A DNA stretch of 17,197 nucleotides from the NCBI GenBank assembly GCA_033442325.1, contig JAWQFM010000027.1, positions 47,929 to 65,125 on the forward strand. The letters are read 5' to 3'. Numbering within the stretch: the stretch's first letter is position 1; every line of letters starts with the position of its first letter. The position numbers and the translations under genes are program-made. The notes beneath the pieces are model-generated. The model saw only the letters and a program-made list of their open reading frames with translations, ran no database searches and was not told the DNA's origin. The stretch comes from Salpingoeca rosetta. Taxonomy: Eukaryota > Protista > Choanoflagellata. Shown one piece after another: positions 14,201 to 17,147 of this stretch.

Positions 14201-17147
14201 TGAAACGCTCTGGACCGAAACGTGCGTGGCAGTGGGCGAATGAACATGCGGTGTATGCGTGTTGCGTGTGCGTGTGTGGGTGGTGATGACGTTTGCACCA
14301 GCAATGGCGGTGGTCATCATCGTCTGAACTCCCACCCGCAACACAAAACGTCCACGCTCAAAACGAAGCCATCCTTGACGCTCACATGCTGCTTGTCCCG
14401 CGATTGTTTGCACGCACCTCGACCATAACCCTGATCAGCGCGACAATGGAGATTGCCGGCCAGCTGCCGTGCGAAGAGATGCGGGCTGTGGTGGTGAAGA
14501 CCACCCGAGCAGAGCAGTCGCCCGTGCAAAACGCAGTCAAGTCCATGGCCGACAAGAACGAGGAACTCCGCAGCGTCATCGAGGTACGTGTGTGGGGTGT
14601 GTGGGTGGGTGTGGGTGTGTACAGAGGAACCTGCCCGTTGCTCCATTTCTTTTCGCTGCTCCTCACCTCTCCTATCCTCTTCACTCCTGCTCCGCCCAAA
14701 TGCATCGTCGCCAGCTGCACGGGTCTGACCCGAGCCTGAACGTCAATCCGCTGACGATGGCGCTGCAGGGCGTCCTCGACGCCGCCGTCATGGGCGGTGT
14801 CAACAAATACAGGTGCGACCTCTGTGGTTGTGTGTGTGTGTGTGTGTGTGAATGTGTGGATGCGTGTGTGTGTGTATATTGTATGCGCATCAAGTGTGTG
14901 TGTGTGTGTGTGTGTGTGTGTGTGTGTGTGTGTGTGTGTGTGTGTGTGTGTGTGTGTGTGTGTGTGTGTGTGTGTGTGTGTGTGTGTGTGTGGATGCGTG
15001 TGTGGATGTGCGGATGTGTGGATGTATAAAGTTGTGTGGACGCGTTTCATGTGCGATAACGTCCTCACCATCACCACCATCTCGCCCGCTGTTTTTCGAC
15101 GGCGACAGGGAGGCGTTCTGCACGGAGGAGTTCCTGGCGAAGAATCCGGACGAGGCCGAATACGTGCAGCGCCTGAAACGCCTCATCAAGCAGCAGGTAC
15201 TGCCATGGCGGTGGCGGTGGTGGTCGTGGTGGTGAGGACGTGCGACCACATTAGCAGCCACGCTCTCGCACCCAACGTGTTGACCCATGCCATACGCACC
15301 CTCTCTTGCTCAACCCCTTCCCTTCATCCCTTGCCCCCTCGCCCAATGCACATTCCCCAGGTGACGATTCTTGAGGCTGGCGTCGCCGTGCACGGGCAGG
15401 CGTGTCCAAAGGAGCTGGGCCAGCTGCAGGACCGCTTCTCCACGCTGCTCGAGGACATGCGGCAGCAGACGCTCGCAGACGGCGACACCGAGGACACCGC
15501 ACACGGGTGAGGGCACAAGTCGTGGTTGCTGTGTGGTGTGCTGGCGATGGGATGTCCGTTGTAATTTGTTGCCCTCGCGTGTACAACACATGACTTGCGT
15601 TGCTACTCTTTGTGTTGTCATCCCTGCTACTCCTCTCACTCGCGCCATCGCCACAACTCTCCCTCCACGCATTCTACACACACACACACACACGCACACG
15701 TACACACACACACACACGCACGCACGCACACAGCGAGGCTGAGGCCGCCACGGCCCGGCCCCCGAGCTATCAGAACCCGCCCCGGTCATCGTCTGCATCC
15801 ATGCACGCCAAGGAGGCGGCGGCAGCCACAGCAACACTGCGCACTCCGCCAGCGCGCCCGTTTGCATCGTCGTCACCAGCAGCGGGCGCGAAGACAGCCA
15901 CGCTCGCCAAGCCGCCACCAGCTGCTGCTGCTGCCACGACAGCAACAACGGGTGCAATGCACGGCATGAACCGCGCGCCGACTTTGCGCAAGAAACCGGA
16001 CGGGAGCGGGATGCAGTCGACACCGCCGGCTGTGACACCGAAGAGCAGAGGCAGCGCTGCATCGATCGCGTCATCGTCATCAGCGACATCAACGCCCGGA
16101 TCATCAGCAGCAGCAACAGCGGCACACCAGCAGGGGGAGCCCACCAACCCGTTCAACGCCAAGCTGTCGACACCCGTGCCACCAGTACGCAGCACGCCGC
16201 CGCGCTCGCCAGGATCAATGCGCAAATCGGTGACGAATGTGCAGGCGAATCTGCCGCAGGGCACGCCGCCACCGCGCCCCGCAGCCAGCACGAAGCCATC
16301 ACCACGCGTCTCGTCAAACCCATTCAGGTGCGCTTGCATGTTGGCGTGCGCATGCTCTGTGTTCATCTGGGGGTTGGTGATTGCGTGTTGTGTGCATGTG
16401 GGTGTTGTGTGTTGTGTGTTGTGTGTTGTGTGTTGTGAAAGCACGCGTGTACATGCGAAGGAAGGAACATATGATTTGACTGGGCGTCAACGTGACTTTT
16501 TTCGTTTCTTGTCGCATCTGCGTTGTGGTGTCTTTCACAGTCCGACTTCCCAGACGCCAACGGCAACACCACCACCACGTCCAACCAGCAGCAAGCCATC
16601 GGTACGCATGCACGCGCATGCACGCGCATGCACGCTGTGCTTGTTGTCTGCTTCAACGCCCTTGCAACCGCCCCCCCCCCTTGTTGCATTGTTGTGGTGC
16701 CCTGTCACATATAGCAACCATGCTCACCTCTTTGTTGCCCATCCACCATCATCCTTCACCCATCCCCCGTCTCCCTCGGTTTTGACTCGGAATCGACCGT
16801 CATGTGTATTGTTCAGCCGAATCCGTTCCTGAGCCGCAAGAGCAGCACCGCCAGCACCCCGCCCTCCTCCTCCCGCATGAGCATCGCCGAATCCGTTCCA
16901 TCCGATGCCCCGCCGCCGCGTCCCCCGTCCTCGGGCAAACCCCCACGGCCCTCGGTCACCACCAAGCCGTCCACGCCAACCACGCCAACCACGCCAACCA
17001 CGCCAACAGTCGCTGCCAAGCCGGCCGTTGCGTCCAAACCGCCAAAGCCAGCGCCGTCGCCGCGCACGCGGAGTGGCGCACCGTCAACATCGGACACTGC
17101 CAGCAGGGCATCTGTTGACGACGCAAACCCGTTCCCGCCCGCAGACG
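3299..17147 (+). CDS. Dedicator of cytokinesis (DOCK-A/B, DOCK180/DOCK1-5-like) Rac guanine-nucleotide exchange factor; 38 visible exons, 5'- and 3'-partial, internal exons lost in gap
   Basis: Frame-consistent GT-AG exon chain gives the SH3 end (GWYRGRVLGGSSHLGIFPANHI), EVVDVLREWG, KIDWGNQHLGLDLIPRDEQG, DHR-1 (RNDLYVTI...YYHNNNPTWNETFKI...FRHC...LCSTKLTQN), DHR-2 (AEAGLALKLHA, YFRVGYWG..RNKEFIYR, NEFETLWTE, SPVQNAV, LQGVLDAAVMGG) and a Pro-rich tail. Confidence 0.95.
4291..4366. repeat. Intronic (GT)n microsatellite
   Basis: Perfect GT run just downstream of the donor at 4279. Confidence 0.95.
4852..4900. repeat. Intronic 25-bp tandem duplication
   Basis: tgtatgctgcccatgcctc(g/a)cgtg twice. 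Confidence 0.85.
5240..5314. repeat. Intronic 35-bp tandem duplication
   Basis: ttgatggaggcggtcgcgtt(g/t)gtg(t/g)ttgccgcgtg twice. Confidence 0.85.
5320..5410. repeat. Intronic (CA)n microsatellite
   Basis: Perfect CA run. Confidence 0.95.
5597..6316. other. Assembly gap (720 N) inside the DOCK gene, hiding coding exons
   Basis: N run. The protein jumps from ...MACVFA to QGRNDLYVT, skipping a segment of well over 100 aa present in known DOCK-A/B proteins. Confidence 0.95.
6420..7487 (+). CDS. DOCK gene, DHR-1 (C2-type, phosphoinositide-binding) domain exons
   Basis: Exons 6420-6538, 6800-7201, 7425-7487: RNDLYVTICDGTFD...RNIEV; SVIYYHNNNPTWNETFKISI...HIKFYFRHC...FCFAFIRLV...DGPH...LCSTK|LTQNVSLRKLLTWR. 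Confidence 0.93.
6551..6730. repeat. Intronic (TTG)n/(TTC)n trinucleotide repeat
   Basis: ttgttgttg... interrupted by tttaag and ttc units, inside intron 6539-6799. Confidence 0.92.
7720..12004 (+). CDS. DOCK gene, central helical/ARM-repeat region exons
   Basis: Exons 7720-7817, 8009-8187, 8377-8453, 8664-8804, 9019-9089, 9287-9447, 9640-9860, 10077-10160, 10352-10421, 10715-10941, 11154-11258 (or 11261), 11451-11576, 11807-12004. Landmarks: IIKFPTDIFDAIF, FRSVLDTYIDHHF, MKAIEYIFKFIVRS, VYPPDWVVMRM, LWSQFF...SLQVEDFSETKR, LVGPFQEMALIP...TIPMFFDM, GAGDQEY. Confidence 0.9.
10456..10594. repeat. Intronic (CA)n microsatellite
   Basis: Near-perfect CA run of ~140 bp. Confidence 0.95.
12190..15506 (+). 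CDS. DOCK gene, DHR-2 catalytic GEF domain exons
   Basis: Exons 12190-12276, 12449-12517, 12671-12778, 13037-13138, 13397-13576, 13767-13835, 14094-14221, 14439-14583, 14715-14812, 15109-15196, 15361-15506. The nucleotide-sensor motif DAAVMGG with the conserved Val is intact. Confidence 0.94.
12841..12966. repeat. Intronic interrupted (GT)n microsatellite
   Basis: Directly visible. Confidence 0.92.
13209..13259. repeat. Intronic 9-bp tandem repeat (TTGTTTGTA)n, ~5.5 copies
   Basis: ttgtttgtattgtttgtattgtttgta... Confidence 0.9.
14894..14991. repeat. Intronic (GT)n microsatellite
   Basis: Perfect GT run. Confidence 0.95.
15734..17147 (+). CDS. DOCK gene, Pro/Ser/Thr-rich C-terminal tail exons (continues beyond window)
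   Basis: Exons 15734-16327, 16541-16601, 16817-17147 stay in frame (phases 2, 2, 0). A probable donor GTgtgt at 17148 leads into (TG)n, and no stop codon is reached. Confidence 0.82.
16971..17008 (+). repeat. Coding 9-bp repeat (ACGCCAACC)x4 encoding TPT units
   Basis: Translation STPTTPTTPTTPTV. Confidence 0.88.

Follow-up and report, generated by a model that had tools for sequence, protein, structure and literature searches.

A lineage-specific array of NPF motifs on the predicted disordered tail of a choanoflagellate DOCK180-type exchange factor

Does the C-terminal tail of a DOCK180-type guanine nucleotide exchange factor (GEF) of the choanoflagellate Salpingoeca rosetta carry signals for the endocytic machinery, and which proteins would read them? 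The question is raised by a window of 17,197 nucleotides (NCBI GenBank assembly GCA_033442325.1, 55.4 Mb in 68 contigs; contig JAWQFM010000027.1, hereafter C27, C27:47929-65125), the plus strand of which bears one long gene with many introns; the window means here this whole stretch, and coordinates, all on its plus strand unless a contig is named, count from its first letter. An earlier note on this DNA had pointed to four Asn-Pro-Phe (NPF) tripeptides in the spliced tail of the gene and had proposed that they wire Rac activation to proteins with EH domains, for which NPF is the canonical ligand. The DOCK180-ELMO-Crk module is conserved in animals, where it serves engulfment and migration, its membrane recruitment varies by lineage and is poorly known outside animals, and choanoflagellates, the closest living relatives of animals, live by capturing and engulfing bacteria and serve as the reference for questions of animal origins. 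The analysis reported here indicates that the DOCK tail carries a real, lineage-specific array of short motifs, which recurs in choanoflagellate-type relatives, and that EH-domain proteins are its probable readers.

All four motifs were found, with every codon triplet in place and in the frame fixed by the DHR-2 domain: NPF1 (GEPTNPFNAK, 16146..16154, codons AAC CCG TTC, context EPTNPFNA), NPF2 (RVSSNPF/SP, the slash marking an exon boundary, 16317..16325, followed by a Ser from a split codon and a Pro from the next exon), NPF3 (PS/PNPFLSRK, 16820..16828), and NPF4 (SVDDANPFPPAD, 17126..17134, context DDANPFPP), the last of which corresponds in position to the terminal NPF of P0004, P0225, and P0226, three of the relatives described below. 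The 327 whole-codon residues of the tail include 9 Asn, 68 Pro, and 5 Phe, a composition from which 0.028 NPF are expected, against the four observed; none of 200,000 shuffles of the tail exceeded two, and the remaining orderings of the three residues occur once in all (PFN). Four of the five Phe residues lie inside NPF, in line with the statement of the earlier note that the motifs account for nearly all of them, and the density of 12.2 NPF per 1000 residues compares with 0.051 in a six-frame background of 80 kb from the same genome. A chance origin of the array, previously called unlikely, is excluded by these counts.

The same data bear on the view that the motifs have no function and simply reflect composition or a DNA repeat, which could draw on the low complexity of the tail and on a 14-base word, GCCGAATCCGTTCC, present at 16816 and again at 16886, the second time out of frame. 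This view is close to refuted and scarcely credible, given the result of the shuffles, the codons and flanks of the four sites, which differ from one another so that the sites are no recent DNA repeat, and the same excess in six diverged relatives but not in 193 control tails. The repeated word itself, which covers the P-NPF of NPF3 (16816-16829) and recurs 70 bases downstream (16886-16899), may be what is left of a fifth NPF after a shift of frame, or a repeat due to chance; the actual frame reads AESVPS at the second copy, and the RNA has no indel there.

The motifs are distributed over three exons of the mature transcript. Tail exon 1 (15734..16327; about 198 residues, rich in P, S, T, and A) holds NPF1, NPF2, and the proline motif PPPRPAASTKP (16266-16298); tail exon 2 (16541..16601) holds PPPRPTSSKPS (16569-16601), immediately ahead of NPF3; and tail exon 3 (16817..17147, with a donor GT at 17148) holds NPF3, NPF4, and PPPRPPSSGKP (16910-16942). 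The introns from the end of DHR-2 through the tail exons are all of the GT..AG type. In a stranded raw RNA run, 57 reads join 16327 to 16541 and 91 join 16601 to 16817, the depth is 20-180 over exons (about 150-180 over exon 3) and 0-3 over introns, and no indels or alternative junctions are reported by the reads in the tail; the same exon structure is found in the transcript contigs of three further studies. The junction between 15506 and 15734 sits in a masked CA repeat, and the contigs pass directly from one position to the other, with exactly six letters at the masked positions 15734-15739, the number that this junction predicts. The frame of the tail is fixed by the conserved DHR-2 exon at 15361-15506, whose last two bases (phase 2) form one codon together with base 15734. 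The junction reads, the contigs, and this frame confirm the tail exons in the mRNA as they had been assumed.

The earlier suggestion that more motifs may follow beyond the window holds for the transcript, since exon 3 is not terminal and 112 reads go on from 17147 into ..A-PPPRPTSAK.., whereas further NPF are not established. The 30 letters that continue these reads past 17147 have no match anywhere in the assembly, and a run of N of about 2.75 kb lies directly past the window (C27:65126 to ~67880), so that the C-terminus of the DOCK protein is hidden in an assembly gap. Transcript contigs of three runs reach 116-152 bases beyond 17147, and by analogy with P0004 and P0226 the stop codon would be expected some 25-40 residues past NPF4. 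In the part of the tail that can be read, P, S, T, and A make up 67% of the residues, tail exon 1 has no match to a Pfam family, and its AlphaFold2 model has a mean pLDDT of 51 and is devoid of secondary structure; on this model and composition, the DOCK tail reads as disordered. The tail introns start GT-rich and end CA-rich (15660-15733, 16328-16440, 17148-17197).

Whether such an array has a function can be judged from its retention in relatives. With the C2 exon of the window as the query, a set of 1.84 billion representative proteins was searched, and a DHR-2 search was made with P0004; the 234 DOCK-A/B-type proteins with a locatable DHR-2 end formed the set for the tail counts, and the window gene was searched, counted, and placed exon by exon. 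The six distinct full-length relatives carry six (P0004, whose 90% cluster includes a EukProt protein of Bicosta minor), seven (P0225, from JGI), six (P0226, also from JGI), six (P0228, from Logan), seven (P0056, from a Tara Oceans metagenome scaffold), and four (P0006, from Logan) NPF, in every case confined to the tail, where 0.05-0.08 are expected per tail and 20,000 shuffles never came up to the observed count. Retention of the motif in orthologues, at four to seven copies in 6/6 full-length members of the clade, is the strongest sign of function. The tree of the DHR-2 region (FastTree) unites P0004, P0056, and P0006 in one clade (SH-like support 0.974) and separates them from the fungal and filasterean proteins and from the animal DOCK1-like and DOCK3-like groups. 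The C2 exon gives a weak tree, in which P0225 and P0226 group with P0004 and P0228 with P0056, and the window exon stands near these groups, with the fragment P0001. Proteins bearing NPF are the best match for 7 of the 15 window exons. The fragment P0001 (an ENA contig of 1,194 bases) encodes 236 residues that are 70% identical to the C2 exon of the window and runs into a VCVCVC read-through resembling the GT-rich introns of the window genome; it is probably a genomic contig from a close relative of the window organism.

With the exception of a terminal module, the tails of these proteins are too diverged to be aligned or detected by sequence search. Protein searches with tail exon 1 gave no match in the permitted length range, a result that is silent on longer relatives, and those with the tail of P0004 matched only P0004 itself and P0225. 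The terminal module, common to the window, P0004, P0225, and P0226, is formed by an acidic run, an NPF, 7-13 residues, and [VP]PPRPTS[SNA]K; the nine residues PPRPTSSKP of tail exon 2 recur unchanged in the C-terminal module of both P0004 and P0226, PxxPxK proline motifs occur in P0006, P0056, and P0228, and acidic runs stand beside NPF in several relatives. Motif number kept, positions shifting, and one module conserved in its position is what would be expected as the signature of a functional short linear motif. If S. rosetta is, as we take it to be, a craspedid and Bicosta an acanthoecid, on the two sides of what we take as the deepest split in choanoflagellates, and if the assignment of P0004 to Bicosta holds, the NPF array would be older than this split.

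Outside the choanoflagellates the picture is different, with a single NPF in the other 193 DOCK-A/B tails (48,844 residues), where 4.3 were expected, and this one in the fungus Basidiobolus. These control tails, of at least 100 residues each, come from human DOCK5 and from animal DOCK1-, DOCK2-, and DOCK3-like proteins, including those of sponge and jellyfish, as well as from Capsaspora, Pigoraptor, and fungi, and are redundant, with many mammalian isoforms. The opinion that NPF arrays are not a feature of animal DOCK1-5 tails is therefore upheld in the non-choanoflagellate tails sampled. In the DHR-2 tree the NPF-bearing relatives fall outside the animal DOCK1-like and DOCK3-like groups, the window itself being placed exon by exon, which suggests that the choanoflagellate DOCK180-type gene stands outside the animal A and B subfamilies. 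Monosiga DOCK proteins have been placed outside the animal subfamilies before (PMC3620097), and choanoflagellates have been credited with orthologues of DOCK1 and CRK (PMC5043372), in both cases with no mention of NPF; a full-text search found no literature linking NPF motifs to DOCK proteins, or Dock180 with Eps15 and NPF.

The identity of the gene that carries the array is borne out by its other exons. Its body extends over 3295..15506, as marked by Pfam matches and collinear tblastn exon matches, with an SH3/DOCK_N region near 3295-3825, the DHR-1/C2 exon at 6800-7204, TPR_DOCK at 10675-11250, and, at the end of DHR-2, a penultimate exon (EAFCTEEFLAKNPDEAEYVQRLKRLIKQQ, 15109..15196), whose junction from 15196 to 15361 is seen in the raw reads and in contigs of three further runs, and the last exon (15361..15506), which matches the ends of P0056, P0002, and P0004. 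The C2 exon gives DOCK-C2 (PF14429) at 116.4 bits (1.9e-33, cut-off 33.6) and TPR_DOCK reaches 59 bits (4.5e-16); lobe C of DHR-2, on a single exon, gives 18.7 bits and DOCK_N, the ELMO-binding end, 19.4 bits (cut-off 27), both under the cut-off. No Pfam match to an SH3 domain was obtained in the window gene, and its SH3/N-terminal region matches P0061 at 57 bits in tblastn. The full-length proteins P0004, P0006, and P0061 have 14-16 collinear exon matches to the window from about 3295 to 15506, with 9-10 collinear exon matches over the DHR-2 region. Because of these Pfam domains and collinear exon matches, the window gene is assigned as a DOCK180-type GEF, for which Rac specificity would follow from the family alone. 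Two assembly gaps (2637-2736 and 5597-6316) lie within the DOCK gene region.

What the array would do on such a protein is best approached from the behavior of NPF elsewhere. A single NPF binds weakly, and arrays engage several EH domains on multi-EH or oligomeric scaffolds. We consider it probable, short of any firm conviction, that the tail, by means of its NPF and proline motifs, concentrates DOCK-ELMO on membranes bearing EH scaffolds and so couples Rac activation to uptake or recycling. The single DOCK180-type (pre-A/B) GEF of the choanoflagellate would then have in its tail a disordered platform for short linear motifs, where proline motifs of the PPPRP-x-x-S-x-K form are mixed with at least four NPF; the NPF probably act as several weak ligands for EH domains in proteins that resemble Eps15/REPS, EHD, or intersectin. 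Simultaneous binding of several motifs would enrich DOCK-ELMO on the EH-scaffold membranes, with endocytic or phagocytic uptake sites and recycling tubules as candidate places, and at these EH-marked sites DOCK-ELMO would switch on Rac and actin assembly. A bolder version, in which an ancestral array of four to seven NPF ties DOCK-ELMO to an EH scaffold, so that the coat machinery triggers Rac and actin at bacterial uptake in a choanoflagellate-specific manner, is put forward only tentatively and is rather doubtful; if true, this wiring would be older than the split between craspedids and acanthoecids, and animals would either never have possessed it or have lost it, with Crk, ELMO, and PIP3 as their inputs instead.

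Partners of the required kind are encoded in the same genome, where EH (PF12763) matches are found at four loci, the best at 59 bits and the other three at 26-38 (cut-off 22), none of the EH domains lying within a single exon. The loci at C10:163952 and C4:1432215 are two of the four. One locus, on C27 (about 146-148.5 kb), contains two or more EH domains, and another, on contig C8 (1546600-1548600), has a C-terminal EH domain over three exons, at about 1.5477-1.5486 Mb, with an EHD_N exon upstream, so that the C8 gene appears EHD/RME-1-like, that is, of the recycling-tubule type. An ELMO gene is also present. In the C8 gene, the EHD_N and 'DADFDAKPQVL' exons are followed by about 0.5 kb and then by a linker and the C-terminal EH domain, with no room seen between EHD_N and linker for a G domain of the dynamin type. 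This hints at an assembly error or an atypical short form of the gene; an NPF (SSGNPFSS) also lies in the linker.

An EHD-like protein in the genome also gives a foothold to another explanation, in which EH proteins bind the NPF motifs but act on the DOCK protein itself, by sorting, sequestration, turnover, or autoinhibition, DOCK being their client or cargo. It rests on the same motif evidence as the recruitment of DOCK-ELMO to EH-scaffold membranes, and nothing separates the two; in its favor are also the acidic runs beside NPF in several relatives, as in EHD partners, since EHD domains prefer an NPF followed by acidic residues. In the window, nevertheless, where the motifs read NPFNAK, NPFSPT, NPFLSR, and NPFPPAD, acidic residues at +1 to +3 past NPF are absent from 4/4, in contrast to some relatives, and the explanation is considered rather unlikely. 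The same flanks dispose of a further proposal, that of an NPFxD-type endocytic signal read by an SHD1-like domain as in yeast Sla1: the core tripeptide is the same, but Asp at +2 is found in none of the four window motifs and in only 2 of the 40 motifs of the clade, and the SHD1 domain is known from Sla1 of fungi. The motif itself defeats the NPFxD/SHD1 reading, to which we give the least credence of all.

POLE2 has recently been described as a non-EH receptor of NPF, in a paper that restates NPF as an EH ligand (PMC12808100), and the window motifs may likewise be read by a POLE2-type pocket or by a choanoflagellate-specific domain. The prediction of a complex between the EH domain of C8, as two exon chains, and a 35-residue segment with NPF1 scored 0.23 against a mark of 0.34, a value that counts neither for nor against EH binding. 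The partners of POLE2 are nuclear replication factors, while DOCK GEFs act at membranes, and the genome does have EH genes. Multiple NPF in disordered tails are, moreover, generally known as the classic signature of EH ligands, and a non-EH receptor is accordingly judged improbable, and more so than the client or cargo role.

Against the recruitment of DOCK-ELMO to EH scaffolds stand, besides POLE2, several points of different nature. We infer the EH binding of the tail, the identity of the EH partner, and the cellular site from the rule that NPF is an EH ligand. The flanks of the window motifs vary and agree with no single known class, nor with the EHD preference, and the DPF/DPW, FxDxF, and clathrin-box motifs, frequent companions of NPF in accessory proteins of endocytosis, were not found in the tails. 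The placement of the window in the NPF clade, made exon by exon, is weakly supported, and the description of the array as choanoflagellate-wide depends on S. rosetta, Bicosta minor, and environmental sequences.

Two other genes of the S. rosetta genome complete the description. A second DOCK, a zizimin-like paralogue on contig C2 (627001-636200), ends right past DHR-2 and lacks both a disordered tail and NPF; its exons are long, with an open frame of 892 residues at the C2 domain, and it ends about 90 residues past the match to lobe C of DHR-2. The next gene downstream of the DOCK gene, about 4.7-6.2 kb past the window end, has RanBP2-type zinc-finger-like repeats (W-x-C-x-x-C...N-x-x-x-x-x-C-x-x-C) together with FKFGAS (FG) repeats and looks like a Nup153/Nup358-type nucleoporin.

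In summary, a conserved NPF array on the only DOCK180-type GEF offers a concrete hypothesis of how Rac activation may be coupled to the uptake machinery in choanoflagellates, and one that is testable, as transfection and genome editing both work in S. rosetta. The array also provides a clean case of a disordered tail rewired by the gain of short motifs on an unchanged catalytic core. No principle is overturned, since NPF-EH recognition and motif-bearing DOCK tails were both already known.

The nearest known systems differ in what they share with the window protein. In animal DOCK180/DOCK1 (CED-5, Myoblast city), a proline-rich C-terminal tail binds the SH3 domain of Crk; the family is the same, and a disordered, motif-bearing tail likewise follows DHR-2, with proline motifs that are of the PPPRP type in the window, but the sampled animal, filasterean, and fungal tails have no NPF array. 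The yeast NPFxD signal for the SHD1 domain of Sla1 has the NPF core in common with the window and departs from it in its Asp at +2, lacking in all four window motifs. Partners of EHD/RME-1 proteins, such as MICAL-L1, rabenosyn-5, syndapin, and Rab11-FIP2, carry an NPF followed by acidic residues; an EHD-like gene is present in the S. rosetta genome and some relatives have acidic runs, but the window motifs are free of an acidic cluster at +1 to +3. A resemblance is also seen to the endocytic accessory proteins epsin, synaptojanin-170, Hrb, Numb, stonin 2, and yeast Ent1/2, whose NPF arrays bind the EH domains of Eps15, intersectin, or Pan1. The carrier in the window is a Rho-family exchange factor and not a coat adaptor or a lipid phosphatase, DPF/DPW motifs and clathrin boxes do not accompany its NPF, and its EH binding is putative; nevertheless, in both cases the NPF motifs are scattered in disordered sequence, keep their number while their positions shift, and are preceded by S, T, A, or P.

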